A DNA stretch of 64,000 bases from IMGVR_UViG_3300031997_000001:171459-235458, one strand, 5' to 3'. Counted from the first letter of the stretch, positions 29,124 to 63,221 are shown. Notes: generated by a model from the sequence alone, not told the origin. Translations and numbers: made by a program.

Positions 29124-30611
29124 CGTACGCGGAGGGTTCGAACTATGCCGCTGATCGTCAGTTTTGAACCAAAGATAGGACATGAGGTTATCGCAGCTCT
29201 GCGAAGGTTGGCGCCGCATTTCATATGACAAGCTCGCCTCACGACTGGCTGAGGCCGTCATACTCGGACTCAAGCGGCACTTCATCCCAAAGAGCAAGAC
29301 GGAACTGTCGAAGAATACGACGTTCTATATAAAGGTCGCCAAATGGGACAGAGATCCATGGAATCCGCCGCCTAAAGCAGCAGCAGTAGACATCCTCCCC
29401 CCAGACACCACGAAGCTCATTCAGGACATGTTCAAGGACACCCTGACACATGTAGCTAGGGATTTTACTCTCCGCGTAGAAGTAAAGGATGTTCAGCTCT
29501 GGCACGCGGGCTTGGCGTTTTTACGCCGTTCTGACGACGAAGCGGACATATCTATCAACATTTATTGTCACCATGAGTGGGAGCTTGGATGGGGAGGAGT
29601 GCAAAAGAGTTTGAGCATGACGTATAAGAGCGTTGCACAAGTCCTGCGGCATGAACTAGAACACCTGAGGCAATATGGATCTGGTGAAAAGCGCGACGCC
29701 TATGACGCACGTAAAGACTGGTTCGCGAAATCAATGGTCAGGAACCTCGCCCCACGCGTCGTGTCTATGCCCCACTACGGCAATGCTAAGTATTATAACT
29801 GGATCACGGACGTTCACGAAATAGGTGCAATGGTTACGGACATCCATTTCAGCGCACGAAGAAGGGGAGTATCGTTCGAAAAAGAATTACAAAGACGCCT
29901 AGCGGAAGATGAGAGAAGGCTGAAGGAAGAGGGGATCCCGGACGATCTGATTGCAGACATCACCAAGAGATGCTGGGATTTCGCAGCGAAGAAGTATCCA
30001 GGACTCATTAAGAAGCAGGTACCCGAACTGAAATCCTCGGAGCCGGTTGTTCCTCCGACCGGATGAGATCTCCTATAACGAAATGCGGGACTGCGGCTCA
30101 GGCATCCAGAAGGTCCGGTTCCCTCCAGGCCGCTGACCAGCAGTTTTTCGTGATTTTCGTCGAACTATGCCGCTGACCTGCTGGCTAGCCTTTCTCGCGC
30201 GTCACATGCGTACGTGGAGGGTTCGAACTATCCGCCGGAATTGAGGCTGCCGGAGACGGGTGAACTGGGTGCCAGACCGGAAGACAAGTTCCGGGCACCC
30301 AGGTCACCACCAAGCGGAAGTCCGACGCGAGTGAGTGGTGGAGGTGAGGGTAAGAAGCTGGATGGCATCCATCCGCTGTTCACAAAACCTATCTGGATGC
30401 TTCCGCACACGAGCAGGTTGTACAATGCGTATTCAGGAGAAAGGCCCTGTAGGACCTGTCCGCACCAGGGACAGAACCGGTGTCCGGTGGCGTAGTTGAC
30501 CCCGCCGGACTGCGAATTCGAAAGCTGACATGTGCAGTAAGGCACGCCCTATTTACGCGGGAGGCAGGGATTCCGGACGCGTCGCACGCGCACGCGTTGC
30601 CTTCGAACTAT
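29124..30611 (+). repeat. four direct copies of TCGAACTAT, with longer shared flanks
   Basis: 29124-29154, 30160-30176 (17 nt identical), 30209-30236, 30602-30611. Confidence 0.7.
29182..30066 (+). CDS. HExxH metallopeptidase-like protein with MRLxxLxE N-terminus
   Basis: VLRHELEH, later HEIGA; starts MRLSQLCE. Confidence 0.65.
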   Translation: MRLSQLCEGWRRISYDKLASRLAEAVILGLKRHFIPKSKTELSKNTTFYIKVAKWDRDPWNPPPKAAAVDILPPDTTKLIQDMFKDTLTHVARDFTLRVEVKDVQLWHAGLAFLRRSDDEADISINIYCHHEWELGWGGVQKSLSMTYKSVAQVLRHELEHLRQYGSGEKRDAYDARKDWFAKSMVRNLAPRVVSMPHYGNAKYYNWITDVHEIGAMVTDIHFSARRRGVSFEKELQRRLAEDERRLKEEGIPDDLIADITKRCWDFAAKKYPGLIKKQVPELKSSEPVVPPTG

Positions 30612-30936
30612 TCAAAGGTAGGGTATGAAGCAGACCTGCAAGTGCGGTGAGCCTCTGCCGCCCGAGGTCCAGGCGAAGATAGAAAGCCTCAAGCTGGTCC
30701 TCTCAGAATCACTCCCTTACCTGACGCACAGCGCCACGCTCTCCAAGGACCTGGTCCCATGGTCCGAGGCGCTGGTCCAGAAGGTCCACAAGGTACTGTT
30801 CCTGGATCCGTAGGCTGGAGAAGTCCCGATCCTATGATCTCTAATACCCGCTTCAAGCTCATCGCCGCCTTCATCATCCTGTGTCTGCTCTACGCCCTGA
30901 CGCTCGCCATCATAGGGCGGATGAGCTGACCGGATT

Positions 30937-33354
30937 CTAGGACGCACAGGCCCGCTCACATCTCTGTCTGCTCGCGGAGGCAATCCGCCTGTCGAGCGCT
31001 AGCTGGTCCCCCTTGAGCGGATAGCCGATCCGCCTTATGACTCCAAAGTATTCCCCTACGACGTCATGGCCGCACCAGTTCATGTACCTATCGTGTGTAT
31101 CTCTCCAGGCGGACCGGTCGCCGTAAAGGGCGTTGACGATGGTATTGTCTCTGGGATTCTGCAGGTCGTAGAGGTCCCGCTCGTGGAAGACGCGCCAGGC
31201 CCAGAAGTCCACCAGCCAGCGGCCGTCGATGAGGCAGAAGTCGTGGCCGAGGTCCTTAGCGACGATCACCGCGCTGTCGTTGGCCGGCCATCCGTGCTCG
31301 CGCCCGTGGGTGTAGCCTATCTGCTGTCCGTTGAACTCCCAGGTGAAGATGGCGGCGGTCCAGGAGCACATGCCGTACAGATCCCTTCCCGTCACGGGGT
31401 CCTTGACGAAGCCATGCGCGCACTCCCACCTATATTGGCGGCGGAGGCGCGCGAGCTCCCTCCGGATCTCCCTAGGCTTGTTCACCTTCGGGGTCCTCCG
31501 CGTTCGATCTTCTTGCGCATGGCCTTGATCTCATCCGCGTCTAACAGACAGGCCCCGGCAAAATAGTGGTCCCGGATGCGGTCGTGCGAGCGCGCCCTCG
31601 CGAGACATCTGCCTTCCGCCCACCGCAGTGCATCAGCCAGGACGGCGCGGATCAGGACTGCGGTGGACGCGATCCTCCGCCCTTGCGTCTCATGGGAACG
31701 CCCCTTGACGCATCGCTCTGCATATTCATGCGGATCGATCATAGTCTCTACCCCTTGACTTCCTGCGCAGGCGCGGTAGCCTTGATCAGGTGGCGTATCT
31801 GGTCGACGTCGTACTGCGCCTTGATCCATCCGTCATGGGACTTGCCGCCCGGGGCGAAGTCGGCGCTCCCGCTCATCCACTGGACGAGCCCCCATGCCAG
31901 GTGGAGTGCCTCCTTCAGCCGGCTAGTCTCCGTGTCATCCAATTTCGCTTTCAGTACGTCCCGCTCAGTGCAGTACTCCAGTCTCGCTTTCAGGGCGTCC
32001 CGCTCAGTGCAGTACCGGCGCGCCTCCTGATTGGCTTCCGAGAGGCTGGCCTCCAGCGCGGCTATTCGTTTGGATGACTGTTCCGCCTCGACCGCCATCT
32101 CCGTGAAGAGCCTTGGATCTATCATGGATTAGCCCCTAAAGAAGTATATCAAAAACCCGGGTCAGGAATGTCGTGAGATATCTAGTTCCAGTTCCGAAGG
32201 GTCATAATGGCCCACCGTCCCATCCTCGTGCTGGACTTCGTAACAAAGGCCGTGGGAGTCGTGGTGCTTGAGGATAGTCCCCTTGACGCCCCATTTCCTG
32301 GACGCCAGAGCTTCTCCGGTCCAGTCACCGCGGCCAGACCAGAAAGGCTTTGTGGTCTTCACCTTCGTACCGGGGTCCAGAGGGGGCCATTTCTTCACGT
32401 CGGGTGTATGGTCAGCAAGGCCGCCAGCAGGGATTCCAGGGTTTTGGCCTTCCACGATCCCTTCTACGAGCTTTTCTGCCTCGGCTATGTTGACCCTGAC
32501 GTCATAAGCTACCCGCCCGAACGCCAGGGATTCCGCTATCCACTTGATCAGCGGACGAAGCTTGGGATCGTCCAGCTTTCTGATCCTGTCAATGGCCTCC
32601 TCGCGGGTCAAGAGAGTGAAGTCGATGTCCGCTTGTGCGCCCTCGCGCCATGCAGCGCCCTCTGCCTTCAGCGCATCTCGCTCAGCAGTCAGAGTGGCGA
32701 TGCGTTTCTCGTATGCGGCCTCCACACAGGTTATCCGAGTCCGCAACATATCGCATTCCTGCACTAGACCGTTTACTCCGGCCTTCAGTGCATCCCGCTC
32801 GTCGGTCAGTGCATCAATTCGCGCCTCGTGACTTGTAGGGTCGCCCACTTTGTGCCTCCTGGTTACTTGATGACGATCTTGTGCAGTGCTTCCGCGGCGA
32901 TGTGAAAGCAGGGTCCAGCTGGCGAAAGGTCGCATCCGGGCCCGTCTTCCTTGCAGACCGCCTGGAGGGCGGCTACTGCTAAGTCCAGCTTCTCGGTCAG
33001 GGACCTCTCGGGTTCCAGCCGCAGGAAGCGTAGCTGCGTAGGGCGCAAGCCGAGGTCAGGATTTTCTGGCACAGTACTCTTCCTTAATAGTGCTGTGGCA
33101 ACAGGGCCGATCCAGTGACCTCACCGTCGAGGCGTACTCCGCACAGTTTGGCTCTTTCGCCTGTCCATCCGGGCCAGCGACCGCTTGAGCCTGGACGCCT
33201 GGATGTTGACGATCTTGGTGCCGAGGTAGTTGCCCTCGGGGCCTCTGAATTCCACGACAACCTCTATCCGGCCCTTGCACTCGTAGTACCAGGACTTGGC
33301 ATCGATCTTCTGAGGTCCCCGGCGCCCCAGGCTGCATCTCGTCTGTCTGGTCAT
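30937..33354 (-). CDS. run of hypothetical genes (30937-31485, 31748-32125, 32162-32935, 32863-33072, 33121-33354)
   Basis: Tiled ORFs; recurring coiled-coil motif [TA]ERDALKA. Confidence 0.55.
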
Positions 33355-34204
33355 TTATTTCCCTTTCATTTCATGGGCCGCAATCACCGCGTTGCAGACG
33401 GCACGGGCGGGGTGCTTGGCAGTGCCTTCCCAGTCGACCTCGTTCCACGCGTCATCCGCGGTTCCTACGACGTAGAACCACCCGGCTACCCACAGGTCAA
33501 GCTCTTCGTGGTAGATCAGGCTAAAGCGCCCGGTGAGAGCAGGTCGCTTGCCGACGCGCAGGCGCAGCCCTATCTTCTTGACCGCCTCCATCGCGTCATC
33601 AATGCATCGGGCGGGCGTCCAGGAGTGGGAATCCGGGATGTTCACCCACTCGCTTTCGAAGACGCCTCCGGTAGCGCGGTCGTCGCGCTCCCAGCAGCCG
33701 TGGTCATCGGCATAAGGCTTGGGAGACGGCCAGACGAGGTCCATCCCCTCCTTGTCCCAGGACCAGGACTTCCATGTCATGCCGAGGATCTTGGAGGCAA
33801 TGAAGACGTCTGCCTCGTCGTCGGTCATCGCTGCTATCTGTTTCTGGCTAAGCATGTTTCGCCTCATGGGCTGCAATGACTGCATTGCAGACGGCGCGGG
33901 CGGGGGCGCTATGCGACATCCAATCCACTACGGCACCCCATCCGGCCATCCACTTCTTCGTACCTAAATTCCAGACGAGACCAAAAGTCAATCCCTCTAA
34001 TTCCAGCCCCATCTTCCCCGCCGCCTCGACAGCCTGGTTGAGATCGGTGGCAAACTGGGCGGCATAAGAACTCGTTCGGCTGATATCTCCCGTCCACCAG
34101 GTGCCGTAGGAGAATGTCCACCCCATCACCTTCTCGGCCAGATACTTGCTGGCCTCCGCGTCGGTGAGTGCCTCGATCTGCTTGCGAGTAAGCAGGGTAA
34201 GCAT
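33355..34204 (-). CDS. two tandem phage ABA-sandwich (BC1872-like) domain paralogues (33355-33885, 33848-34204)
   Basis: Both show iA.kvmGw...[F/W]....id.A.eav.K...PARAVCNAVIAAHE; ML...QI.A.TD.EA starts. Confidence 0.65.
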
Positions 34205-34783
34205 TTTATCCTCCTGATGGCTGGTCCGTGGATTCCCGGAGGGCAGAAACGCTGTGGACTATGTCGTCCGCCGGGAGGCCGCACAAGCGGCAGGGTTCCT
34301 GACCGGCGAAGCGCTCCGCCTTGCCGTCAAACCCGTGCATCTTACACAGGGCTCGCTCGAGCTGCTGGACCCTCTGGCGAAGAGCTTCCGCGGTCGATTC
34401 CTGGAATCCTTGGGCTGTCATGTTAGATCACTGAAAGCTGGTCCGCAACCCGTGCTTCGGACAGGTCTTCGCTTCCCATTTCTCGCCCTTCTGAGGCAGG
34501 CGCAGCTTCCTGCTGGTCAGAGCACGCCAGGCAAGCCAGAGGTCAGTCAGCCTCTTGAACATCTTTATTCCTCCGACTGGATAACAATCCCTACCAGTGA
34601 AATACGGGTCCGAGAAGCATATCGAACTAGGTATGACACTGACATCTACACCATCTATCATGACAGAGGTTGTGCAATTCTGTTTTGCACCACCTACTTC
34701 TTTTCGTGCGATGCTTGCGCTTCAGTTTGGATGCTTTCATATTTCATCGAGGGCCTGGGCATTGCCGCCCAGGCCCTCTCTAT

Positions 34784-35398
34784 CTAGTCAATCGGCTCCC
34801 ACTTCAAGATCTTGAACTTGCCGAACACACCGCGGTAGGTCCCGATCCCGATGGCGTAGCCACCCTCCTGGATCAGGTTACGGATCTGCACTTCCTGGAT
34901 TTCGGTATTCGGAAGAATTGTCAGCTGGAACTCGAGCTCCCAAGGCAGCGGGAGGACCGGCCGGACCTTCGGGTTCGGCACCCCATCCTTCAGCCGGGCA
35001 ACCCGCCGGTCGATGTAGCAGCCCGACAGGGCGTCCTTATCCCCGTCGAACTTCCCGAACTTGATCGGCTGATTGTCCTTCAGGAAGGGGATCATCATCG
35101 GCTCGATGATGGTAAAGGAAAGGCACGAATTCGCAATCGACAGCCCCTTCTTGCCCCGCAGCCGCCTGGGCGCCGACACCGTGTTCTTGGCCGACAGGAA
35201 CGAGTGGATGTTCGCCGCCGGGAGGCAGATGTTGCGCTCTTCGTCCAGGTAGAGCTTCTGCATCGGCTCCAGCTTCGTGTCGTTGTCCCCGGCGTACCGG
35301 TCGAACATGACCGCCGTGATGCCCTGAAGCCGGACCAGCCGCCTGATCATGTCCTTCGTGCCGGCTTCCGCGACGACCGCCTTCGATTTCGCAACCAT
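34784..35398 (-). CDS. stand-alone Cas7-like RAMP protein (204 aa; Vipr-like)
   Basis: First strand VRLQGITAVMF, ICLPAANIHSFL helix motif, WELEFQL strand, C-terminal G-rich loop GGYAIGIGTYRGVFGKF; GGAG RBS 8 nt before ATG 35398. Confidence 0.8.
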   Translation of the reverse strand: MVAKSKAVVAEAGTKDMIRRLVRLQGITAVMFDRYAGDNDTKLEPMQKLYLDEERNICLPAANIHSFLSAKNTVSAPRRLRGKKGLSIANSCLSFTIIEPMMIPFLKDNQPIKFGKFDGDKDALSGCYIDRRVARLKDGVPNPKVRPVLPLPWELEFQLTILPNTEIQEVQIRNLIQEGGYAIGIGTYRGVFGKFKILKWEPID

Positions 35399-35417
35399 TG
35401 ACGGATCTCCAAAAAAG

Positions 35418-36003
35418 AAACCCTGCCTTGCCGCGCCGAGCCCGGCCAGGCCCTGCCCGGCAGCGCCGCGCCAAGCCTTGCCGTGCCTCGCCGTGCCGAA
35501 GATTCCTTTGTAAAAGCTAGCCTTGCCTCGCACTGCCCTGCCTCGCCCAGCCAGGCCGGGCCGGGCCTGGCCCCGCACCGCCTGGCCCCACCGGGCACCG
35601 CCTCGGACAGAAGATCTTGTAAGAAGAGCTGGCCTTGCCGTGCACTGCCGTGCCTCGCCCCGCCGGGCGCGGCCATGCCCTGCCTCACCTTGCCTTGCCT
35701 CGCCCAGCCGTGCCAGGCCGGGCCCGGTCAAGTTGGCAGTCAATGTTTCGTGTTGTAAGAAGAGCTAGCCTTGCCTCGCTGCGCCCTGCCCCGCCCCGCC
35801 TTGCCGCGCTTTGCCTCGCCCGGCCCGGCCGCGCCCCGCCCTGCAAAGCCCAGCCACGCCGTGCCGTACCTTGCCCGGCCGCGTCTTCACGTAATGCTTC
35901 TTGTAAAAGAGCTAGCCTTGCCTTGCCTTGCCCTGCCCCACCTGGCCCAGCCTCGCCGCCGCCTTGCCTTGCCTGGCCGCGCCCGGCCCGGCCGAGCCGT
36001 GCC
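35418..36003 (-). repeat. five-block GGY-NN pentamer array (putative guide-RNA array)
   Basis: Blocks 36003-35913 (18 units, one is 6 nt), 35880-35766 (23), 35724-35630 (19), 35602-35518 (17), 35497-35418 (16); 84/93 units begin GGY; linkers 20-41 nt all contain TTACAA. Confidence 0.9.
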
Positions 36004-36015
36004 CCGACTCAGACA

Positions 36016-36504: not shown

Positions 36505-36551
36505 TTCGTGCCTCCCGAAAGGATTGTCGAAAACCTTCACCCAACTAGATC

Positions 36552-36581: not shown

Positions 36582-36684
36582 GGATTTCGTTGTATCTAGA
36601 GCAATACAACAATAGGAGCGAGCTCGCGGGTCAAACGTATCTCACGGAAGTGCGGATTATTCCCCCTTACTAAGGAGGCACGAC

Positions 36685-37353: not shown

Positions 37354-37357
37354 AGAT

Positions 37358-40000: not shown

Positions 40001-40034
40001 CGCTCCCCTTCTCTTCCATTGGCAAAGTTATTTT

Positions 40035-40475
40035 ATGCGCTTATCCTTATTGACAGAAGCCGATCCTTCTTATCGCATTGTTGAGCTGCGCCCGGGTGCG
40101 AAATCCGAGCTAGCCGACCAAGTGGACCTGGAGAAGGAGAATAATAATTTCGTCGTAGGGGCTCTGACCAACGACGACATGGCGCGGACTGCCGTGCTGG
40201 ACGGCGACGAGGTCATCGGCGCCATGTCCTGGTCTGAGGAACCGAAGGTCATTTGGATGCACATGTTCGGATCCACGAAGAAGGGTGCCGGATCGATGCT
40301 TTTGAGACGCCTGGCCGGGAAGGCAAGGACAGCCGGGAAGCAGATCTGGCTGAATAGTATTGCCGGGATGGAAGAGTATTACAGGAACCTCGGCTTCCGA
40401 AGGGAACCGTCCACCGGGCAGGAAAGGACCTTCGCTGCGAATCCGGAAGAGGTCCTGAGCAAGCTGGGGAGCTAA
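40035..40475 (+). CDS. GNAT acetyltransferase with MRLxxLxE N-terminus
   Basis: KKGAGSMLL (motif A), EEYYRNLGF (motif B); ATG 40035. Confidence 0.75.
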   Translation: MRLSLLTEADPSYRIVELRPGAKSELADQVDLEKENNNFVVGALTNDDMARTAVLDGDEVIGAMSWSEEPKVIWMHMFGSTKKGAGSMLLRRLAGKARTAGKQIWLNSIAGMEEYYRNLGFRREPSTGQERTFAANPEEVLSKLGS

Positions 40476-40662: not shown

Positions 40663-41303
40663 CTAGACCAGAACCCGCCTACAGCCTAATCCGAACGGCA
40701 AGTCCGGCACGACCACGATGACTTTTCTTTCCACTGTCTCGATTTCCGACTCTTCTTCGGCTCTTATTTCTTCCGGGTCCAAATATCTCCGGCCAATGAC
40801 GCTGAAAGTACTGCGCCACACGGCTTCCCTTCTCTTCTCCTCTGCCTTTATCGCCACCCTACGCTTCGCTTCCTGGACCTGCTCTATAAGGTCTTTAAGA
40901 ATCTGTTCATCGACCTCTTTGGCCATCTGCTGGGACATTGCCTGGATCAGTTCTTCTTGAAGTCGCTCTCCTATGTCAATGCCGTGAACCGCCTTTAGGT
41001 CTTCCACAGCCTCTACGGACCAGGCTGCCTTCAGCCCTTTCATGGACGGTGTCGGCATTGGTTGCACGCTGACCAGACTATCGGCGAAGTCTTGAGCAAG
41101 GGAAATGTAAAATTCTTCTCGAATGAATTTGCGGGTGAGGGTGTGCCGAACTCTTTTACGAATTCTTCCTGGCTTGAGATGATTTTGGGCAGAGGCCCTT
41201 TGGGTATTTTACCTATGACCCCCGCCCATTTCTTTATAATCTCATTCGGGACATAACCAACCTCGTCGATGAAGGAATACTTTTTGGCTTTTGGCGCGTC
41301 CAT
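40663..41303 (-). pseudogene. miniature T4 gp23-like (major capsid) gene, split by a frameshift near 41090
   Basis: IIKKWAGVI, FTFPLLK // DFADSLVSVQPMPTP, LKAAWSVEAVEDLKAVHGID...EVDEQIL. Confidence 0.6.
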
Positions 41304-41332
41304 GGAATTAAAATACGAACCAAAAGTATCGT

Positions 41333-41929
41333 ATGGCATTCGAACGTCTGCTCTGTGAAGTCCTCGGCCTCGAGGTCATCATAACCGACATCGACGATAC
41401 CCTCGTCGCGGTCGGGAATCGGGCAGTAGAGTCCCTCAGGCAGCTCGACATCGAGGCCACCCCCGAGGACTGGGAAGAAAAGCTGGATGCCCTAAAACAG
41501 AAGGCGAAGCAATCCCAGGAGGATAGGGACAAGGTCAGTCAGTTCTTCAAGATGTTCCTGGACGACGCCTTCACGCATCTGGATGCGCCACATAGAGCCA
41601 TTTACGATTTCATCCGTATCCTGGCCAGCAAGTCAAGCCTCCCCGTGGTAGCCGTCTCCGGCCGGCCGGAAAAGATGATCAACAGCGCCATGAAGATACT
41701 CAAAGGCATTCCGCTGACGGACATCATCCTGAAGCCGGAAGGCCAGCGGATGCTAAAAGCGCCGGAATACAAGGTGGATGCCATTAGAAGGAAGAATTAC
41801 ATACCCAAGTTCGTAATTGATGACGAGCCGACTGTCCTGGACGCGATCGGGAAGGAATGGCCCGACGCCGTCCTCTATAGGGCACATAACGGAAGCATAG
41901 TCCCCTATTTTAGCAAAGATCAGACATGA
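41333..41929 (+). CDS. HAD phosphatase (polynucleotide kinase 3'-phosphatase-like)
   Basis: DIDDTL, VSGR, K, VIDD motifs. Confidence 0.8.
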   Translation: MAFERLLCEVLGLEVIITDIDDTLVAVGNRAVESLRQLDIEATPEDWEEKLDALKQKAKQSQEDRDKVSQFFKMFLDDAFTHLDAPHRAIYDFIRILASKSSLPVVAVSGRPEKMINSAMKILKGIPLTDIILKPEGQRMLKAPEYKVDAIRRKNYIPKFVIDDEPTVLDAIGKEWPDAVLYRAHNGSIVPYFSKDQT

Positions 41930-44147
41930 CATTCCTGGAACGGCTGGAACAGGCGATCAACGAAGTCATTTCCGGGCGCCATGCGATGGCTCTCGATCCG
42001 CGGACGTTCTTCGATGTAAAGCTTACCAATGACCGCTCGGTCGGTGACATCATCGAGGTGGACTGGCGGGCCGAGCTCAAGCATGACAAGCCGGATTTCG
42101 GCAAGAAGAGGCCCATCGCGGCGGATGGCGTTGCGGTCGCGGCTCCGGGCCAGAAGGCAGAAATAGAAGTCCTGGAGTGGGAAGTGGGCGGCGTGACGAT
42201 TCCCAAGAACCTCTGGCACAACAACGTCCGCGGCGAATGGGAAGCCGCGATCGAGAAGGACGTGCGGGCCGCCGTAGCGAACCTGGCATCGGAGAAGAAG
42301 GCAGAGGTGCCGCCTCCGCTCCCTAATGCTGCTCCTGAGGAGCCGCCTCCACTTCCTTCACGCACTGGATACCCAGAGTCTTTACGGCAGAGACTAAATC
42401 AATTGCTGGGCGAGGTTTGATGCCCGGCGAGATCCCGACAAGCTTGTACTGGAAGTTGTAGATCATCCTCCGTATGCATCCGTGGCAGACCCAGACATAG
42501 GCACCATCCCACTTATCTTCTGTGCGTTCGGCCACGCCCTGGCAGTACCTGCAGGTTGTTTCCATGGCGGCATCAAACCACAAGATTCGTTTGGCGTCAA
42601 TAATTCACTGTCTCGTATTTAAAAGCCATGTCTCCCATGCCTCTATCTGGTTGGGCTGGAGTCCAGGGCGGCCAAGGCGGCAACCAGGGTCGTTATGTGC
42701 AGAAGGCCGCAGACTTCCAGGCTATACAGAAACTCAACGATGGTCCTCCCCTCTCAAAAGATGGATATAGACAGTTCTTCTCCAAGAAACAGAGTTCTGC
42801 GGGAATATTCTTCACCGCACTAGACAAAAAGTGGAACAAAATCGGTATAACCATCCGGGGGCAGATCGATACGGACTTCGGTCCCTCCTGCATCGCTAAG
42901 GTGATGGACCTATCCGAGAAGGACGAAATTCAGAAGATCGCAGAATCGCTCGAAAAGAAGACGATGGTCTTCAAGATCAAGATAACGAACATGGGCACGC
43001 CTTATGAACCGGCCCTGGTCGTCAAGAAGACAGTGGACGTGCAGGATAGCTGGAACGGGCTTTGCAACATCCTCCTCGACGACATTACCGTTGGGCCGAT
43101 CAAGAGCAACTGGAATGTTAATATCGTGGTCACGCGGGAAGGAACTGATCCGCAGGATACCTTCGAAGGTACGTTTAATTTGAAGGATATGGAGGTATTT
43201 CTTCCGCAGGTCGCGGAGGAAATGCGAGAGGAAATGCAGGCCCAAAAAGAAGGCGCGCCAAATGTGCAAAAACAGCTCGATGAGGCGATGAAGAATCTCG
43301 AGTCGATTACGAAGGCCGTAAAAAAGCTCCAAAGTCCTCTCACCGTCCTAGATCCAAATACGTTTGAGCTAGTTCCGGCGCCACAAATGCCTGTCCAGCC
43401 AAGCGCGGCAACCCTGCCAGGCGTCATCACCGCTGAGGTCCTGAAGAACTGCGATATGGCGACGCTGCAGAAATTGAAGCAGCTCGGCATCCTGCAATTG
43501 GAAAGCAAGATCCTGCAATTGGAAAGCAAGCAGGTTCCTATTTTTGGCGACCCACTCTCCCCTCCCGCGGTCATAGACAAGCCGTCGGGATTGCCGCTTG
43601 GCAAGATGGGAGGCAGAAAGGTGGATCTAACATGAGCCCGTTAGCAGAACTCATCAAGAAATGGACAAGCAAGAAGGGAAAGGCAAGTATCCTCCCGAAG
43701 CCGATCACAGCTCCCGGAGCTGTCAATCCTAATTGGAATCCGTTGGCGGTAGACGAAGAAGTCTACATGCCTCTGGGCGTACAAGGGCTTGTGGGCGGCC
43801 CGGGAGTCCAGGGCTGGCAAGGGTCTGTGGGCTGGCAAGGGTCTGTGGGCTTGCAGGGTCTTGGAGGCTACCAGGGAGGCAGTCAGGGCAGTTGGGGCGG
43901 TTGGACCCCTGGTAATCAGGGGTTCAATAACCCGCCGCAGGCGGTCCAGGTCTCCGTCTCTTCCGCCCCCGTGAATGGGGTCAGGGAGGTCACGCTGACT
44001 GCAGAGGGCCTTGGCAAGAAGATCTCCATCCAGGGATTTGGCGTGCTGGTCTGGGACGGGAAGGAATGGCGTCTGGACGGGAGGAAGGCGGGCGAGATAG
44101 CTTCTGGTCCGATCGGCGAACTCGGAAATCGGATCATTTCTTTCTGA
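41926..44147 (+). CDS. hypothetical proteins 41926-42420, 42628-43635 (21-nt tandem duplication at 43489-43530) and 43632-44147 (Gly-x-Gln-Gly repeats)
   Basis: Long clean ORFs; GxQG repeats include an 18-nt tandem DNA repeat. Confidence 0.65.
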
Positions 44148-44938: not shown

Positions 44939-45487
44939 ATGAGACTTTGTCTTTTACATGAAGCCGAAGCAGGCCAGATAGACATCCTCCAAGTCGCTAA
45001 GATACTGGAGAGCGAGGTGTTCTCCGGAATTAAGCGACTTGGGAAGGACTTCCACTCATTCCAGTTTAACTGGCCCAGCCCCGTTAGCGACACCATCCGC
45101 GACGACGTCATAAGATGCCGCGTAAGCGCCGGCGCCGGTGGCAGGCCCGTCGCGGAGAGGACTTATCTCATAAGCCTTGGAACGGGTAAGCCCGGCAAGC
45201 AGAAATCGAGGGATGAAAAGTGGGCGGATATCATGCAGAAGGCGGAACAAGCTACGCAGAGCATACCCCTCTTCCTGGCCAGGACAATCTTCGGCGTTTT
45301 AAATAAGGAGAGGCGCGTACAAGCGGGCCCAATCATGGTAGTGCAAGCGGTAGAAAAAGAGAAAGTGGTAGAGACCAAGAATTATCCTATCACGTCGATA
45401 GGGCTAAAGGATCTCAGATTGGATATTTGGGACTGGGCGAAGAATGCCGTGCTCGAGGTCATGCCGGGGGCGCAGAAGCTTCGGTAG
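44939..45487 (+). CDS. hypothetical protein with MRLxxLxE N-terminus
   Basis: TAAATA at 44916; starts MRLCLLHE. Confidence 0.7.
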   Translation: MRLCLLHEAEAGQIDILQVAKILESEVFSGIKRLGKDFHSFQFNWPSPVSDTIRDDVIRCRVSAGAGGRPVAERTYLISLGTGKPGKQKSRDEKWADIMQKAEQATQSIPLFLARTIFGVLNKERRVQAGPIMVVQAVEKEKVVETKNYPITSIGLKDLRLDIWDWAKNAVLEVMPGAQKLR

Positions 45488-45661
45488 GTCCTTTGGTCTT
45501 GTATGCCGCTCTTCTTCTCGCGTTCGCACAGATCTTACAAAGGTTTCTACGGCCATCGCAGTTCTTGACGTCCACGCCAAATTCCTCGACCGTCTTGACC
45601 TGCCCGCATCCGCCGAGGTTCTTTCGACATTCCTTGTGCGTGATCACAGCAAAGCTACCTT

Positions 45662-45832
45662 ATGAAACTCGAGCTGCTTGCCGAAGATGTGATTCTGGAA
45701 CGCATCAAGAAGATCGGCCCCGGGAAATGGCGAGTCCTTTCCAAGAAGGGGAAGAATCTCGGCACGTCTTCGTCGAGAAAGGGAGCCGTAAAGCGCCTAG
45801 GCGAAGTCGAGTTCTTCAAAAGCCAGAAGTAA
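45662..45832 (+). CDS. 56-aa basic protein (not in ORF track) with MKLxxLxE N-terminus
   Basis: MKLELLAEDVILERIKKIGPGKWRVLSKKGKNLGTSSSRKGAVKRLGEVEFFKSQK. Confidence 0.7.
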   Translation: MKLELLAEDVILERIKKIGPGKWRVLSKKGKNLGTSSSRKGAVKRLGEVEFFKSQK

Positions 45833-55264: not shown

Positions 55265-55271
55265 AAAGAAA

Positions 55272-55293: not shown

Positions 55294-55321
55294 CCTCCGA
55301 TTACGTTTCAGCAGAGACCGG

Positions 55322-56389: not shown

Positions 56390-56425
56390 GACTTCCTCCT
56401 TTAATGGTTCTCCGTGAAATACGGC

Positions 56426-56959
56426 TTACACGCTGCCGGCGTCCCTGAGCTCCTGTCTCTTGAAGCCCGCCAATGACCGCAAGTGCTCAGACTTCATCTT
56501 TAACGCCTCTACGATGTTGTAGAGCTTGCCGGAGGACCTCTGCGCGATTAGGAGCTCCGCTTCCAGCTTCTCTAGAATGTCATCTGCTTCGATGAGCTCC
56601 TTTATGTCTGCGGCGCGCAGGGAGACACCCTCCGCCTTTGCCGTGTTAAGGATCTGCTCTGCGACGATGGCCCTGCGCCTCTTTATCTTGCGCTCAAAGA
56701 CGCCGACGACCATCTTCTGTTCACTCATGACTCCGGCCCAGTAGGAAAAGGCGCTTGGCGTCCTTGCAAGCTGCTCTTCGAGATTGTCGTAGTCTATTTC
56801 TACGTCGGTCCTAAAGTCCCGAGAGATAGTTCCGCCGCCTGGCACCTTGACGTGGATGCGGACGACGATGTTCGCAACGTCCTCCGGGATGTTGTCGGCA
56901 AACCATTTGTTCTTGGGAGCTGTCATCGGATTTCCTTGTAAAGCTTCCATTTCTTCCAA
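56426..56959 (-). CDS. UvsY-like recombination mediator
   Basis: Helical; ID..L..QL...P..F.YW...EALKMKS..LRS; sits next to the SSB gene. Confidence 0.55.
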   Translation of the reverse strand: MEEMEALQGNPMTAPKNKWFADNIPEDVANIVVRIHVKVPGGGTISRDFRTDVEIDYDNLEEQLARTPSAFSYWAGVMSEQKMVVGVFERKIKRRRAIVAEQILNTAKAEGVSLRAADIKELIEADDILEKLEAELLIAQRSSGKLYNIVEALKMKSEHLRSLAGFKRQELRDAGSV

Positions 56960-58107
56960 TGACGGCCGACGTAAATCCGGAGCGGAAACGTCGGATTGCT
57001 GTCCAGTATGTCCTTGAACGGATGGAGCATGGCTTCGACGCCGACGTTCAGAACCTCCTTGATCGCGTGCCTATTCGCCGCCAGAGTAATCGAGTCGTGC
57101 ATCTCTGCCACGATGCAGTCGGGCATCGCCTTGTAAATCTGCCAGAGGGCACTATGCATGGCGTGCACCACCGTCCCCTGGAGCGAGGCGTTAAATACGC
57201 TCCTCATATTGTGGAGAGGATCGCCTTCTGTAGCCATCCGGAACCTTCTACCCAGGACGGACTCCGTCCAGCCTCTGTTTTCCAGCTTAGCCTTCTCGAC
57301 GGCGACCCATTTCTGAAGATCCGGCCAGAACTGAAGGGCCGGGCTATCCTGGTCCATTTCGTAGAGAGCGCGAATCATCATGCTCTTGCAGTCTGCCCGG
57401 GTCAGATCTCCCTTCGCCATGACGGTGTAGGGGTCGGACTTCCTGAAGGCTTCTGCAAGAAGCTCGTCTCCGCTCAGGATCTGACCAGCCTTAAGATCTG
57501 CCGAGATCCAGTCCAGATGGATGAAATAGGATTTTTCTTCATCGGGGTGCTTTACGTCGTAAGACGCATCCGTCCCTTGGACGTTGAAACCTAGCGTCTT
57601 TGACCGGCCGCTGACCGTGTTGAGGATATATCGAGGATAGGCGAGAAGGTGACCATTCATGAGGCCACGCTTCTGGAGCATACGATAGACCTGCGTGGCT
57701 CTTCCGAGCAGTTTCATCCAGGGAGCGGGCTGGATGCTGGCAACGCCACGGACGAGCTTCTCGCAGATCTCCTTGGCCCTCTCGGCGGACAACGTACCGT
57801 AATTCGGCTGCTTCGGGATGCCAAAATCCCAGACGTTAAACGGATGCGCCAGTAGGTTGCATTCGCGGTCCAGGAAATCAAGGACCGTTTTGAAGTCGTT
57901 CATCGTTACGGCGGGAAGAGGACTCCCTTTGAATTCTCCAAGGATGGCCTTTGCGCTCTCCCAGACCGTCTTCAAGCTGAGACCGACGCCAGAGAGAAGC
58001 AGGGGGTACGATCTGACGGCATCACTCCCGTCGTCCATGAAGGCAGCCATGAGCGGACGAGAGGACTGCTTCGTGTACTGACACATTACGAAGGCGTGCT
58101 TGGACAC
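56923..58107 (-). CDS. minimal, divergent family-A DNA polymerase-like protein
   Basis: SGR...FNVQ, motif A HLDWISADLK, motif B R..CK.......Y, NASLQGT, motif C EMHDS; no exonuclease domain visible. Confidence 0.7.
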   Translation of the reverse strand: MSKHAFVMCQYTKQSSRPLMAAFMDDGSDAVRSYPLLLSGVGLSLKTVWESAKAILGEFKGSPLPAVTMNDFKTVLDFLDRECNLLAHPFNVWDFGIPKQPNYGTLSAERAKEICEKLVRGVASIQPAPWMKLLGRATQVYRMLQKRGLMNGHLLAYPRYILNTVSGRSKTLGFNVQGTDASYDVKHPDEEKSYFIHLDWISADLKAGQILSGDELLAEAFRKSDPYTVMAKGDLTRADCKSMMIRALYEMDQDSPALQFWPDLQKWVAVEKAKLENRGWTESVLGRRFRMATEGDPLHNMRSVFNASLQGTVVHAMHSALWQIYKAMPDCIVAEMHDSITLAANRHAIKEVLNVGVEAMLHPFKDILDSNPTFPLRIYVGRHWKKWKLYKEIR

Positions 58108-58408
58108 GGAGATGAAATACTTTCCGGTCGGAAATAACGGCAGACGCCCGGGAGAATGCTGACTTTCCAGCCCGAATTGAAGAGTGCGTCCAGTTGGTCA
58201 TCCCGCCAGATGAGCTCGAGCTCACATCCGAAGTGCTTCTCTAGGAAGGCTTGAATCTCCTTATCCTTCTCTCCAAGGTAGGCCATAGTACAGCTCGGAT
58301 TTGAGACGAAGATCTGCGCGCCCTCTCCACATTTGCGACAGATGGCGCTGTACCACGTTTTCATTTGAAGTAGACCTGGCGACCCTGGAAAACGCATTCC
58401 ACAGTAGC

Positions 58409-58768
58409 TCATTTCTTCTTGATCCCGTGGGTCGCGATGACCTTCGGGTGTCCCTGGTGCTTGCCGCCCTTTCGGAGCTTGTCCACCAAGTCCGCTTTCT
58501 CGCCCGGCTGGCGCATATAACCATAGGGGTCGTCGTTCTCGAGTTGGTGTAGGTTCATACTACGCCTGGCGCCTGCCTTATCTCTGACCAGCCCATTGCC
58601 AGGGAAGAAGAACTGGAACGTCATCCCCAGCCAAGTCCTCTTACAGGGCTTCTTGCACTGGGGACAGAGGACTTCCGGCTTCTGGTTCATGCCGTGATTG
58701 ACTTCGAAGACGAAATCCTGACTATCTTCCGTCTTGTGATGTTCGCAGATGTAGTTGTAAGTTGGCAT
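58409..58768 (-). CDS. FmdB-family zinc-ribbon protein
   Basis: MPTYNY.C....FE..H.M...P...CPQC. Confidence 0.75.
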   Translation of the reverse strand: MPTYNYICEHHKTEDSQDFVFEVNHGMNQKPEVLCPQCKKPCKRTWLGMTFQFFFPGNGLVRDKAGARRSMNLHQLENDDPYGYMRQPGEKADLVDKLRKGGKHQGHPKVIATHGIKKK

Positions 58769-60180
58769 TAGGAATTCCCGCCTACCGTCGTAATGTTGAC
58801 GGCCGGCTCGTCCTCCTTGGCCTTCATGGTGACGTAGTTCATACGGATAGCTACTGTCTCGGACTTCGGACCGTTCCGATTCTTGGCGATGAAGAGTCTC
58901 GCTCGGGCGGCTGTGTTTTCAGCCCGGCTCGCGTCGTAGCCGGCCTCGTATTCGTTCTTCGTCTGATTGATACTCACGACGTAGGAAAGCGGCATAGATT
59001 TCCCGAAGGACTCTGCGATCTTATCCAGGTCGATTGACTTCCCGCCGCCAGTCCCGGCCGTCTTCTTGCTGGACTGCTCTTCCTCGTTCATGCCGTACCG
59101 GTTGGTCTGCGTCGCCGTGAAGACTGCCACGTTTTCCTTGTCGGCGAATCCGCACAGCTCCGTGGAGATGGACTTCTGTCTAGCGTAATCGTCCCGGTTC
59201 ATGAACTTGTTCCGCGAGACCATGAGTTCCAGGTAGTCGATAATCACGACTCTCGGATTGAAGCCCTTGTTCCGCCTCAGGAAGTCCATGACCTGATGGA
59301 GGGTGTCTACGCTGACCTCGTCCGCAGGAAACTTGTAGAGGACGAGTTCCGCTCCATAATGGGCCTTGCATCGGCTCAGGATTTGCGTGATCTGATCCTT
59401 GTGCGCCATCCGATGCATATGCGTGACGACCGGCACATTGGTGAATGCGCCGGCGTACCTGACTTGGGTCTTCTTGATGTCTCCTTCGAAGGAGAAGTGT
59501 ACGACGTTGTGCCCAGCCCGTACGTTAGCCTCTCCCGTGTTGCAGAGCATGTAAGTCTTGCCGACGTTGGTCGGAGCCATCCAGACGAAGACGTCGCTTA
59601 TCGTAGGCCCGCCGTCGTTGATGTACCTATCAAGCTTCGGGAAGCCCGTCGTGAACTTGATTTCATTCTCTTCCGTGAAGAGCTCGTGAGCGCGCTCGAA
59701 GAACCAGATTCCCGTCTGGCTGACGTCGGTGATCTTCCTGGCTGATTCGACGATCTCGTTTACGCGGTCAAAGTTCCCGCGCGAGACTTCCTCCATGACT
59801 TCTTTGGAGTAAAGGAGACCCAGGGCACGACGTTTGGCGAATTCGACGACGGACTGCTTGACGACCGGAGCTTCCCGAGGATCAGATTGCTTGTCGATGA
59901 GGGAGATGATCGGCTCGTAGTCGTCATCGACCGTCAGGTTCTTCCTGGCAATGTCCTTTACCAGGCCGCGAGTCGGCGATACCCGGTGCTTCTCTATGAG
60001 TTTCTTGATGATGGCGAATAGGAACTTGGACGGGATGTGCTTGAAGTGATCGATCTGGAGGTAGGGCACGACGGAACTGAAGAACTCTGGTAGGTCGAAG
60101 GCCAGCGCTATGATCGCCTGCTCTTCGTTCTCGCCGAACGTGCGAGAATCCTTATCGTGAAGGGTCTGTTCGTCTGACAT
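58768..60180 (-). CDS. DnaB/gp41-like replicative helicase
   Basis: TGFPKLD, APTNVGKT, FSFE, IIDYLELM, TATQTNR, AESFG, IAKNRNG. Confidence 0.9.
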   Translation of the reverse strand: MSDEQTLHDKDSRTFGENEEQAIIALAFDLPEFFSSVVPYLQIDHFKHIPSKFLFAIIKKLIEKHRVSPTRGLVKDIARKNLTVDDDYEPIISLIDKQSDPREAPVVKQSVVEFAKRRALGLLYSKEVMEEVSRGNFDRVNEIVESARKITDVSQTGIWFFERAHELFTEENEIKFTTGFPKLDRYINDGGPTISDVFVWMAPTNVGKTYMLCNTGEANVRAGHNVVHFSFEGDIKKTQVRYAGAFTNVPVVTHMHRMAHKDQITQILSRCKAHYGAELVLYKFPADEVSVDTLHQVMDFLRRNKGFNPRVVIIDYLELMVSRNKFMNRDDYARQKSISTELCGFADKENVAVFTATQTNRYGMNEEEQSSKKTAGTGGGKSIDLDKIAESFGKSMPLSYVVSINQTKNEYEAGYDASRAENTAARARLFIAKNRNGPKSETVAIRMNYVTMKAKEDEPAVNITTVGGNS

Positions 60181-60189
60181 TCTTTTTGT

Positions 60190-60600
60190 TCAGCTAAATA
60201 GATATGCTTGTGCCAGACCTCGTCGTGCATTGCGACACCCAACTTTTCGAAAGTGTCTCTTTATGGAATCGAGATACTTCACGGCCTCCTGGGGCGATAG
60301 GTCGGCTGGAATCGTGACGCAAAGAGTTTCCCGACCAACACGTTCCACGTGCATAGAGAATTTCCGACCATTTCTGGCCCGTTGGATGTCGTGGATTAGA
60401 GCGACGTCCTCGGCGAGCAGCAGTCTCCTGCGGTAAAGCTCTGCCTTCTTATGGTCCCCAATCGATTCGCAATGCTCTACTTTGTGCCGCCAATAGGCTA
60501 GGTCGTCTTCTCCATTCGGAATGGCTGCTTCTGTCTTGCGTCCGAGCAGGGGTGCAAATGGGAGGAGTGTGAGGGCTTTTAAAAGAGATCGTCTGTTCAT
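60190..60600 (-). CDS. small protein with twin-arginine-like N-terminus and T4 portal (gp20)-like segment
   Basis: MNRRSLLK; LLLAEDVALIHDIQRA...PADLSPQEAVKYLDSI. Confidence 0.5.
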   Translation of the reverse strand: MNRRSLLKALTLLPFAPLLGRKTEAAIPNGEDDLAYWRHKVEHCESIGDHKKAELYRRRLLLAEDVALIHDIQRARNGRKFSMHVERVGRETLCVTIPADLSPQEAVKYLDSIKRHFRKVGCRNARRGLAQAYLFS

Positions 60601-60989
60601 GGGGCACTCCCAGTTGATCCGGCGCTCCCGCTTCCAGGCGGAGTCGGACCGGTGCTTCCCGATCCCGGTGAAACCGAGCATCTGGCGGCAAGCCGAGCCC
60701 TTTCCTCCCGCAACCTTCTCTCGAGATTTTGCACGACGAGCGTCTCTGCCTCGCAGAACGTCAGAAGTTCATCTTCCGTGAAGTAGAGCGTCTGGATGCG
60801 CTTCAGGTCAATATGGTCGCCGAGCGTCTGAGCGGACGGCGGCCTCCTGTTGATGTCGATCGTGTAAACATATCGGTCGTTCCTGAGCTGGAAGATCCCG
60901 CTGATCTTGTAGGCTTCCAGGAAGCCGATCTGCGCCGAGGACCTTAGATACACGACGTCATCGATCCGGAATGCGCTGACAATAGCCAT
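60597..60989 (-). CDS. hypothetical protein
   Basis: 130-aa ORF coupled to 60600. Confidence 0.65.
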   Translation of the reverse strand: MAIVSAFRIDDVVYLRSSAQIGFLEAYKISGIFQLRNDRYVYTIDINRRPPSAQTLGDHIDLKRIQTLYFTEDELLTFCEAETLVVQNLERRLREERARLAARCSVSPGSGSTGPTPPGSGSAGSTGSAP

Positions 60990-61020
60990 AGCCAGACTCC
61001 TATTGGGCCTGGCGTATCTT

Positions 61021-62076
61021 TTATTCCTCCGGCGCTTCCTCCTCCGGTTTGCTGATGATCACGTCCCTCTTCCGGATCTCCTCCCGGACCAGGTTCTCCA
61101 GTTCCGCTGTTATCTCGGGCCTTTCTACAAGGAATTTAAGAGCTTGATCTATGCCGTTCCCAATCTTTTCGTCCTTGAAGCAAATCCAGGCGCCGGCCCT
61201 CTTCAGGATACCACACTGCTCCGCCATGTCGGCAATGCAAGCTTCCCTTTGGATGCCTCTCCCGAAGACGAGTTTGAATTCGGCCTGGCGGAACGGCGGG
61301 GCGACCTTGTTCTTCTGGACCTTGGCGCGGACGATGATGGCGACGGCATCGTCTCCTTCCTTGACGGTCGAAAGGCGCCTGATCTCGATCCGGACAGACG
61401 CCCAATATTTCAGAGCGCGGCCTCCGGATGTCGTCTCCGGATTTCCGAACATGACTCCGATCTTCTCTCGCAGCTGGTTCGTGAAAATGACGCAGGTCTT
61501 CGTCTTGTTTACGATGGGCGCCAGCTTGCGTAAGGCTTTTGACATGAGGGCTGCCTGGGCGCCCATCTGCTTATCTATGAGGTCGCCTTCCAATTCTGCC
61601 TGGGGGACCAGGCCGGCGACGGAATCGATGACGATAAGGTCCATGGCATTCGATGCTACGAACCTCTCGACGATGGTTAAGGCTTGTTCGCCGCTGTTTG
61701 GCTGGGAAAGGTAGAGCTTGTCCATGTCCAAGTTGATCTTCTTGGCGTAGGCAGAGTCAAAGGCGTTCTCGACGTCGACGAACATTGCCCGGCCCTTCTC
61801 GGCCTGGACGTTCTTGACGATCTCCATGCAGAGCGTCGTCTTCCCTGACGCTTCAGGGCCATAGATTTCCGTGATACGGCCACGAGGAACTCCCCCAATC
61901 CCGAGGGCGATGTCCAGACGAAGGGATCCCGTCGGAATAGCCTCAACGTCGCGGATGATGGTCTGCCCGTGCATGACAGACCCCTTGCCGAAATCCTTCT
62001 CGACGGAATCCCAAGCGTGCTTGATGGCCTGCTCTTCGGCCTTGAAGTCCTGGGACTCATCTTTTTCTTTCGCCAT
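61021..62076 (-). CDS. recA: RecA recombinase (bacterial type)
   Basis: PTGSL.LD.ALG.GG.P.GRI.EIYGPEASGKTT, IDSVA.L.P.AE.EG, FTNQLR, GG.ALKY.ASVR, KNKVAPPF. Confidence 0.97.
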   Translation of the reverse strand: MAKEKDESQDFKAEEQAIKHAWDSVEKDFGKGSVMHGQTIIRDVEAIPTGSLRLDIALGIGGVPRGRITEIYGPEASGKTTLCMEIVKNVQAEKGRAMFVDVENAFDSAYAKKINLDMDKLYLSQPNSGEQALTIVERFVASNAMDLIVIDSVAGLVPQAELEGDLIDKQMGAQAALMSKALRKLAPIVNKTKTCVIFTNQLREKIGVMFGNPETTSGGRALKYWASVRIEIRRLSTVKEGDDAVAIIVRAKVQKNKVAPPFRQAEFKLVFGRGIQREACIADMAEQCGILKRAGAWICFKDEKIGNGIDQALKFLVERPEITAELENLVREEIRKRDVIISKPEEEAPEE

Positions 62077-62104
62077 GGGATACTCTTAAAGGGGCCGCGC
62101 TCAA

Positions 62105-63221
62105 TTAAAATACTGGCTTTGCGTCGTCGACTGCCTTGAGAATCCTGCCCATGTCATACGAAGCGATTTTGACGACGTCGACCATGGGAATTCGGATGAT
62201 AGTATTGTTTCTAGCCAGCATGAGATCCGCACCCATGGAACCGACGACTATCCAATCCCCTTTGGGCGTGGCTGGCCTGCCCTTTGGGCCGGAGACATAT
62301 TTGACGTGCTTTTCTTCCTTCAAACGGACGATGTCATTTTGTCTAAACATAAAGCCTTCCTCAAAGATATGTTGACCATTAAATGGAGACTGCCATGAAC
62401 GCTAGTGAGAAGCTCCTCCTGGAAGCCGTCCGCAACATGTTGCACCAGGATGCTAGGCTAGGTCTGGCTTATCACAAGCCGGACCAGGTGAAGCGGGAGT
62501 CTTCTCACTTCATGCAGTTCCATCGAGAGACCATCGACGATATGTACCAGCTTGCGATCTCCGAAAGTAAGTTCGCCGACTCCCTCACTGCCGCATTCAG
62601 CAAGGTTCACTGCCACAAGTACATCGACGATCCGACGTTCAAGCTGGCGATGGACACCGAAATGCGCTCCATGGGCCTCCCGCAAGAGGACCGCGACCTC
62701 GCCCTGAAGTCAGTCGACAAGGTTATCAAGGAGCTGGTGGAGGGCGGAGAGAGGGCTGCTGGCTGGAATCCGCGGATGGACGAGCTGGTCGACCTCACCT
62801 CCAATGCCGACAAGCACGAAATGTCTCACGAGCCGCCCTGGACCGGGGGCGGGCCAAACCCACAACCTGAGAGGGACAAGGCCCTAAAAGCTGCAAAATG
62901 AGACTGACCGCGCTATTCGAATCCACAGCAGGCGACCTCAAGCAAGCCATGGGTCTGCGGTATTTCAAGAGAATGCAGGACCCGCTTAGATCATACCCCG
63001 CACAAAAGAAGCTCCTGCCACAGAGATCTGGTAATCAAGATACGCCGCTCAAGCCGAGGCATCGGATTTACTTCAATGCGCCGATTGGCGCCGTACAGGG
63101 GAAGATTGGCCGCGGAAGTCCATTAGGCGGGGATCTGATGGGCGGGGACGCTGGACCGAAGCGGAAGGGCTCAAGGCACTCCGGCTTCCTTCAGAGGAAG
63201 GGCAAATTCGACAGGCCCTAG
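62105..63221. CDS. hypothetical genes 62105-62350 minus, 62383-62901 plus, 62898-63221 plus (MRLTALFE start)
   Basis: Clean ORFs; the last carries the MRLxxLxE motif. Confidence 0.6.

Follow-up and report, generated by a model that had tools for sequence, protein, structure and literature searches.

The DNA considered here is a 64,000-nt stretch (the window; positions 171459-235458) of the IMG/VR record IMGVR_UViG_3300031997_000001, and the element in question is an eight-residue N-terminal peptide, M-[KR]-L-(S)-x-L-(Y/F/H)-E, hereafter the tag, which is shared by otherwise unrelated phage proteins. Judging from sequence comparison, we put at roughly 0.6 the probability that the tag is a capsid-targeting and cleavage propeptide, the counterpart, in an uncultured clade of T4-like phages with genomes of ~340-400 kb, of the capsid-targeting sequence (CTS) of the T4 internal proteins. 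This idea had been raised in the initial annotation of the window. Those features of a T4-type CTS that can be tested in sequence were all found (an S77 protease, a scaffold-like protein, L-F-E in the capsid protein, an L-x-E end of the tag, unrelated basic carriers, and a clade-wide distribution), except for likeness to the T4 peptide itself; the proposal is thus supported in part. Positions given below without further label are counted from the first letter of the window.

A six-frame search of the entire 235,458-bp record with the pattern M[RK]L..L.E gave 10 matches, each of them at most a few codons from the 5' end of an open reading frame (ORF) of 56-294 amino acids (aa). When gene calls were left out of account, Met was found immediately before 10 of the 32 six-frame [RK]LxxLxE heptads of the record, compared to an expected 0.48 (binomial p=2.8e-11). 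The same test gave 7/48 (p=1e-5) and 5/49 (p=1e-3) in two complete genomes of relatives, G008 (395 kb) and G009 (371 kb), respectively. Among the 307 genes called on the record, the motif stands at 7-10 N-termini, and the Met-less heptad occurs inside called proteins only 6 times in 61,501 residues. The comparison of N-termini with internal positions, which had been proposed as a check, has thereby been run, and the N-terminal enrichment of the tag is real and far above chance. An eleventh strict tag, MKLIMLSE, is carried by a 229-aa protein encoded in a part of the genome that is absent from the record. The strict total in this phage is therefore 11, with six tags outside the window. The five N-termini initially described, together with their ORFs, were all found exactly at the coordinates given for them; as a count, five was too low, since two related N-termini within the window and the six strict tags outside it had been missed. 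Near-misses, e.g. MKLEVLYLSE and MRLSSLYTE, are also present.

Across 35 distinct tags of the clade, the sequence logo reads M, K/R, L, S (13/35), x, L, Y/H/F (20/35), E. The residue that follows the tag (residue 9) is D, A, G, S or N in 27 of the 35 cases, and no preference was seen beyond it. All six Leu codons are used both at L3 and at L6, position 2 is encoded by seven Lys/Arg codons (AGR, CGN, AAR), and position 8 by either of the Glu codons, while the DNA upstream of the tag genes is not alignable. Because the Leu, Lys/Arg and Glu codons vary freely, the tag is conserved as a peptide and is thus a peptide-level signal. Homology of the tags as a DNA-level cassette was also considered and is ruled out by the same freedom of the codons.

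Outside the tag, the carriers have nothing in common. They range from 23 to 390 aa without residual similarity, and an all-versus-all BLASTP of 14 carriers from which the tag had been removed gave a best E-value of 0.12, in agreement with the earlier statement that the rest of these proteins is unrelated. A search of 2.0 Mb of sequence from relatives, which comprised two complete genomes with a 78% identical capsid protein, found no homologue of any of the 14 carriers. Searches of 10 tag carriers against Pfam and PHROGs returned nothing but one sub-threshold GNAT match and one weak PHROG match. The isoelectric point (pI) exceeds 9 in 8 of the 11 carriers, compared to 33% of the proteome.

Selection was assessed against a near strain, G001, from whose orthologues only three carriers differ. 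The ratio of non-synonymous to synonymous polymorphism (pN/pS) was 0.09 for the protein encoded at 44939, 0.19 for the GNAT-like protein at 40035 and 0.19 for the 56-aa gene at 45662, i.e. these three carriers are under purifying selection. The 56-aa gene differs from its G001 counterpart by five non-synonymous changes, only two of which fall within the tag, both at variable positions (E4R and A7T, turning MKLELLAE into MKLRLLTE). This ORF is missing from the ORF track and had been added in the initial annotation; its pN/pS value and the confinement of the in-tag changes to variable positions confirm that it is a real gene. Strain variants of the GNAT-like protein keep M1, R2, L3, L6 and E8, whereas position 7 varies, and one variant has a 3-aa deletion directly after E8. 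From their sequences, the carriers appear to behave as variable, lineage-specific cargo, mostly small and basic, like the T4 internal proteins.

The head genes of this phage lie outside the record. A contig of 284,750 bp from ENA, identified through protein identity and also carrying the window, overlaps both ends of the record and links its end to its start by ~106.6 kb. The genome is therefore ~342 kb long and the record represents ~69% of it, although its CheckV value is 97%. The missing part (loci L022, L026-L029, L042-L044 and L051) holds all recognizable head, neck, tail and terminase genes, among them the morphogenesis genes for gp13, a 973-aa sheath protein, two gp19 tube proteins, baseplate proteins and TerL; on the record, PHROGs and Pfam searches of its large proteins found no structural genes. 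The gene order of the head module (L051) is (i) Portal_T4, (ii) proteins of 1075 aa and 372 aa, (iii) DUF5661, (iv) Peptidase_S77 (229 aa), (v) five unknowns (360, 187, 298, 409-412 and 121 aa), (vi) a scaffold-like protein (247 aa), and (vii) Gp23 (507 aa).

The protease matches Peptidase_S77 with E=5e-23 (82 bits; cut-off 27) and aligns to the T4 gp21 structure 5JBL with E=2.4e-13. Its GELDHP and SSRG segments are conserved, and we take these to contain the catalytic His and Ser. A search of the 235-kb record with PF03420 gave no match, a misleading result, as the protease gene falls within the sequence that the record lacks. The capsid protein belongs to the Gp23 family (E=3e-78) and has a tripeptide, L64-F65-E66, that is invariant in three relatives and located at the prodomain boundary, 37 residues before the conserved VQPM motif; this is the position at which T4 gp23 is cut (LTE then AE). 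The 247-aa scaffold-like protein is charged, has no Pfam match and occupies the gp22 position, and in G008 and G009 its homologues are encoded between the genes for the protease and the capsid protein. As in T4, one genome thus encodes an S77 protease, a scaffold-like protein and a Gp23 protein with an L-x-E prodomain site of its own.

Relatives of the capsid protein were identified in 176 IMG/VR stretches, on contigs of up to 408 kb; the best 80 of the 176 are 71-100% identical, the identity of relatives on 80 IMG/VR contigs being 71-87%. The clade is widespread in sediment and freshwater, and the tag is clade-wide, located on different proteins in the relatives. In the complete genomes G008 and G009, all strict matches (12/12) stand at ORF starts, and 11 of these 12 carriers have a pI of 9.0 or above. 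Contigs with ~60% gp13 identity (G003, G004, G007) carry the tag on other proteins (MRLDIITE, MRLGLINE, MKLTNINE, MKIAILDE, MKLKCIIE) and also encode S77 proteases. In 22 records, a degenerate DNA pattern matched 76 times, whereas its reversed version, used as a control, matched 21 times; translation yields the strict tag for 56 of the 76.

Many tag genes share a feature of their upstream DNA. The 8-mer CAAANNTA lies exactly 12 nt before the ATG in 12 of the 35 tag genes, while a Shine-Dalgarno (SD)-like site precedes only one of the 35, compared to 157 of 306 genes overall (SD sites stand before about half of the genes called on the record). Of 69 copies of CAAANNTA in the record, 13 are followed by N4-ATG, and each other spacing occurs 0-3 times. 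In G008, 47 of 134 copies are followed by N4-ATG, most of them on genes without the tag. The interval from -60 to -12 before gene starts contains 22 copies, a 10-fold excess over the expected 2.2. The 8-mer precedes seven structural genes or operons: the protease, scaffold, gp13, sheath, tube and baseplate genes have it 24-45 nt ahead of their starts. None of the identified replication genes is preceded by it. The late promoter of T4, TATAAATA, lies at -13 to -6; the record contains only three copies of it, which are not gene-linked. Both elements are bare, A/T-rich 8-bp sequences placed before structural genes, with no evident -35 element. They differ in that the sequence here is CAAANNTA and stands 4 nt before the ATG in 13 genes (47 in G008). 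By this analogy, CAAANNTA is probably the late promoter of the clade and would give leaderless mRNAs: with the box at -12, and with TATAAATA as a guide, transcription would begin at the AUG or directly beside it, and a position exactly 4 nt before the ATG would therefore leave mRNAs that are leaderless or have a 1-nt leader.

In this genome, CAAANNTA is present at -12 of five tag genes, and in three more cases a gene with the 8-mer lies directly ahead of the tag gene or reaches into its start. The two elements also occur apart from each other. Tag genes at genome 41804, 43888 and 234356 have no -12 element and are coupled to the upstream gene, while genes of the CAAANNTA type at 30625, genome 39065 and genome 116295 have no tag. 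The first of these, a 62-aa gene at 30625..30813 (+) with CAAAGGTA at -12 (30613-30620), shows that the promoter-like element can occur independently of the tag. An additional copy of CAAANNTA in the window is located at 36632-36639.

In the mechanism that we infer, the tag genes would be transcribed late, many of them from the CAAANNTA promoter, with the mRNA starting at or beside the AUG, which would account for the missing SD site. The N-terminal tag would direct its carrier to the scaffolding core inside the prohead, the gp21-type serine protease would cleave after Glu8 (L-x-E), and the mature, mostly basic cargo would remain with the DNA and enter the host upon infection. Once there, the cargoes might conceivably act on host defenses.

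This mechanism has a precedent. In T4, internal proteins that are basic but otherwise diverse reach the scaffolding core by means of N-terminal propeptides of 10-19 residues, which gp21 cleaves off; the targeting determinants of these propeptides lie early and the processing determinants at the hydrophobic-x-E end (PMC9026906, PMC3012670). The T4 reference sequences are MKTYQEFIAE then A (ipII, ipIII) and a 19-aa ipI propeptide ending in ITE then A, on proteins with a pI of 8.9-9.5. As in the case of the gp21-removed CTS of IPI, IPII, IPIII and Alt, the tag is a short N-terminal propeptide, in our reading, on unrelated, mostly basic and lineage-variable proteins, and both begin with M-K and end in hydrophobic-x-Glu. 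The tag differs from the T4 CTS in several respects: (i) it is 8 aa long, M-[KR]-L-S-x-L-[YFH]-E, compared to the 10-aa MKTYQEFIAE and the 19-aa ipI propeptide, (ii) it has many more carriers, at least 11 strict ones, (iii) its genes are scattered and many are SD-less, with apparently leaderless late transcripts, and (iv) it co-exists with other tag flavors.

Two further delivery systems invite comparison. In the giant phages phiKZ, 201phi2-1 and SPN3US, packaged proteins (those of the inner body and ejection proteins) are trimmed C-terminal to Glu in a three-residue motif, A/S/G-x-E, by a diverged relative of gp21 (gp175/gp245), and most of the propeptides are longer than 100 aa (PMC5694885). 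The system described here has instead a T4-type L-x-E, an 8-aa propeptide and a protease that scores as a bona fide Peptidase_S77. MuF proteins, the polyvalent or polymorphic toxins treated in 2017 by Iyer et al. and Jamet et al., are reported to deliver effector domains attached to a head-incorporation module. In the phages of this clade, delivery would take place via separate small tagged proteins, each with an 8-aa peptide, in contrast to a folded domain of ~110 aa fused to many effectors in one giant protein.

Several observations weigh against the propeptide interpretation of the tag. Beyond the M-K start and the hydrophobic-x-E end, the tag has no similarity to the T4 CTS, and it is two residues shorter; given the lack of further similarity to MKTYQEFIAE, the tag would be an analogue or variant, and not a member of the same sequence family. 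The protease and capsid genes are absent from the IMG/VR record itself and are linked to it via the ENA contig overlapping both its ends. Two carriers, the GNAT-like protein (pI 5.5) and the 229-aa tagged protein (pI 5.4), are acidic, and Asp directly follows the proposed cut in 8 of the 35 tags. The SD-less starts of the tag genes could mean low expression. Finally, a search for RNA runs found the sequence only in DNA metagenomes from sediment.

The hard facts are limited to an N-terminal 8-mer that is conserved and has L-x-E at its end, and to a promoter like that of late genes; these would also suit a propeptide or another signal of late proteins that has nothing to do with capsid targeting, such as an inhibitory pro-segment, a degradation or chaperone tag, or an amphipathic helix binding a host or phage factor. 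The two acidic carriers, enzymes and not DNA-associated basic proteins, fit well with such a signal. We nevertheless consider it unlikely. As far as is known, the activity of gp21-type proteases is confined to the prohead. In T4, these proteases act on proteins already present in the prohead core (PMC9026906), so that any substrate would need to be inside in any case. Moreover, related L-x-E motifs are concentrated in head-module proteins, and most of the carriers resemble the T4 internal proteins in being small and basic.

The rarity of SD-like sites (1/35 tag genes vs 157/306) and the presence of CAAANNTA at -12 in 12/35 could alternatively mean that the first codons meet an RNA- or initiation-level requirement of leaderless late mRNAs and do not encode a protein signal. 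Against this stands the freedom of the synonymous positions: both Leu positions draw on the full set of six codons, and codons of the types AGR, CGN and AAR are found at position 2. The occurrence of the box and the tag separately, i.e. leaderless-type genes without the tag (30625, genome 39065 and 116295, and most of the 47 in G008) and tag genes without the -12 element (genome 41804, 43888 and 234356), is further evidence against an RNA-level explanation, which we regard as very improbable. Even less credible is that the shared N-terminus results from chance, or from common descent of fast-evolving paralogues, and has no function of its own. In favor of this reading, Lys is generally preferred at position 2 (53/307 genes). 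However, the enrichment (p=3e-11 here) is replicated in two other genomes, carriers of such different length retain no residual similarity, and strains that differ at positions 4, 5 and 7 and in the residues following E8 retain the same anchors, so that chance or paralogue descent is already disfavored.

The tag is not the only motif of this kind. A second motif, F-E-x-[RK]-L-[DN]-E-A-[FLY]-G (motif B), contains L-x-E then A and is present in five copies in the genes that separate protease and scaffold. The N-terminus of the 121-aa head-module protein is MRFSERLNAILE then G. Elsewhere, motif B is found at the N-terminus, at the C-terminus or inside proteins: genome 58332(+) (MDFESRLDEAFG), 113583(-) and 137329(-), L042:12217, and L026 ~4362(-). 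Two genes of the window have N-termini of motif-B flavor. The first, 41333..41929 (+), encodes a 198-aa protein with the variant N-terminus MAFERLLCE then V and has CAAAAGTA at -12 (41321-41328). The second, 41926..42420 (+), encodes a 164-aa protein whose N-terminus, MTFLERLEQAINE, resembles the MRFSERLNAILE N-terminus of the 121-aa protein. In G008, at least eight unrelated ORFs (e.g. 97792(+), 290059(+) and 358159(-); loci L134-L153), most of them behind CAAANNTA-N4, carry a 19-aa tag of a third family, M-x-P-D-E-I-A-x-L-I-T-D-D-P-D-V-[LFM]-x-E. This tag was not found in the genome studied here, and it recalls the 19-aa ipI propeptide of T4 that ends in ITE then A. Like the tag, motif B and the G008 family end in hydrophobic-x-E. 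A broader reading, which we hold only tentatively and at somewhat less than even odds, is that these elements form an expanded, modular address-label system. Several short N-terminal tags and some C-terminal ones, all ending in hydrophobic-x-Glu, together with leaderless late promoters abutting the AUG, would load dozens of fast-evolving cargoes into the capsid for injection: basic DNA-binding proteins, a GNAT and possibly a zincin-like enzyme.

One carrier with a predicted activity is the 146-aa protein encoded at 40035..40475 (+), which has the tag MRLSLLTE then A and CAAAGTTA at -12 (40023-40030). As a single sequence, it matches Pfam Acetyltransf_1 with E=0.005, below the cut-off (17.6 vs 20.7 bits), and homologue searches returned only itself or near strains. 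A profile built from four sequences (the strain variants) gave matches in Pfam GNAT domain regions with E-values of 4.6e-17 to 1e-3, and a K-K-G-A-G segment is present at the position of motif A (acetyl-CoA binding). The prediction of a GNAT acetyltransferase, made already in the initial annotation, is thus supported at the sequence level. Nearly all profile matches begin at query residue 34 or later (the earliest at residues 8 and 19), so that in most of them the tag is an add-on. The nearest remote homologues include domains in proteins of 1,973 and 2,626 aa that begin with Phage_Mu_F; related GNATs therefore also occur alongside a head-morphogenesis domain.

The 294-aa protein encoded at 29182..30066 (+) is basic (pI 9.2), has the tag MRLSQLCE then G, and is a candidate packaged cargo. 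The late-promoter-like 8-mer CAAAGATA lies at 29170..29177 (+), exactly 12 nt before the ATG at 29182, in leaderless geometry. The protein had been called a metallopeptidase on account of an HExxH motif, and HELEH is indeed found at residues 156-160; no Pfam or PHROG family was found. The protein matched only itself among 5.8 billion proteins, an IMG/VR scan gave nothing, and in the Atlas it resembles only unannotated clusters of phage hypothetical proteins, with SprT-like and Reprolysin as just weak leads. An AlphaFold2 model made without an alignment had a pLDDT of 49 and was not used for a fold search.

The remaining tagged proteins of the window are all basic. The gene at 44939..45487 (+) encodes a 182-aa ORFan (pI 9.4; tag MRLCLLHE then A), for which an Atlas search gave no usable match. 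The very basic 56-aa protein (pI 10.4; tag MKLELLAE then D) is encoded at 45662..45832 (+), has CAAAGCTA at -12 (45650-45657) and shows a weak match to PHROG 3684. The very basic 107-aa protein (pI 11.2; tag MRLTALFE then S) is encoded at 62898..63221 (+), in a gene that was called in four independent assemblies. The ATG of this gene overlaps the stop codon of the gene at 62383-62901 (ATGA), which has CAAAGATA at -21 (62362-62369).

The window also contains T4-like replication genes (gp32, DnaB, NAD ligase and RecA), and a megablast search of the region against GenBank phages gave no match. A miniature gp23-like gene is present at 40663-41339 (-). It has a prodomain-like KKWAGVIGK, a PLLK...VQPM motif and a KAAWSVEA..DLKAVHG helix, is devoid of the large insertion, and requires a frameshift between two frames. 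A 134-aa ORF at genome 122360-122764 (+) has the N-terminal gp23 motif only, and similar gp23 fragments are found in G008. These mini-gp23 genes could be pseudogenes, cases of programmed frameshifting, or capsid-associated decoys.

The record encodes ~40 tRNAs, in a cluster at genome 8,300-29,400 (-) that covers nearly all amino acids; the tag gene 17213 lies inside it on the opposite strand. A tRNA with a CTA anticodon, which reads TAG, is located at genome 128871-128944 (+) (L011:8871-8944), just upstream of a 640-aa gene. Recoding of TAG was considered on account of this tRNA and rejected: of the 307 called genes, 107 end in TAG, and no clear gain results from treating this codon as sense. 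Translation table 11 was therefore kept. A few frames lengthen under TAG readthrough, e.g. 117800-120937 and 61780-64466. Other features of the genome are giant ORFs of 3,738 aa (genome 76810-88026 (-)) and 2,094 aa (genome 90379-96663 (+)) and several multi-domain glycosyltransferases (1,230, 759 and 639 aa). Also encoded in the part missing from the record are UDG, Mre11/Rad50-like proteins and a DNA polymerase III alpha that is divided between two genes. Beside the DNA polymerase genes lies a gene matching PF25216 (Volactin, actin-like; L022:1467-2471 / L024:1055-2470), whose product is 334 aa long in one assembly and 471 aa in others. LAGLIDADG domains are encoded twice in the same part, once in an intein that interrupts a helicase gene and once in a gene for 795 aa (L026:1167-3980; L028:10261-12648). 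A Tn7 TnsA-like gene comes after gp13.

Packaged and injected proteins are the first move of a phage against host defenses; IPI* of T4, for instance, blocks a restriction enzyme. To our knowledge, outside a few cultured phages such proteins can be found only by virion proteomics. Since the tag resembles a new version of the T4 CTS, it may list the proteins that these phages pack and inject. If this is true, the injected effector set of uncultured huge phages would become readable from sequence, and a clade-wide tag would yield a computational list of candidate injected proteins as well as new anti-defense candidates. The T4 CTS is in use for loading foreign proteins into capsids, and the tag peptide might serve the same purpose for capsids of this type. 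The promoter abutting the start codon, in turn, suggests that in a T4-like lineage late genes are widely expressed from leaderless mRNAs.

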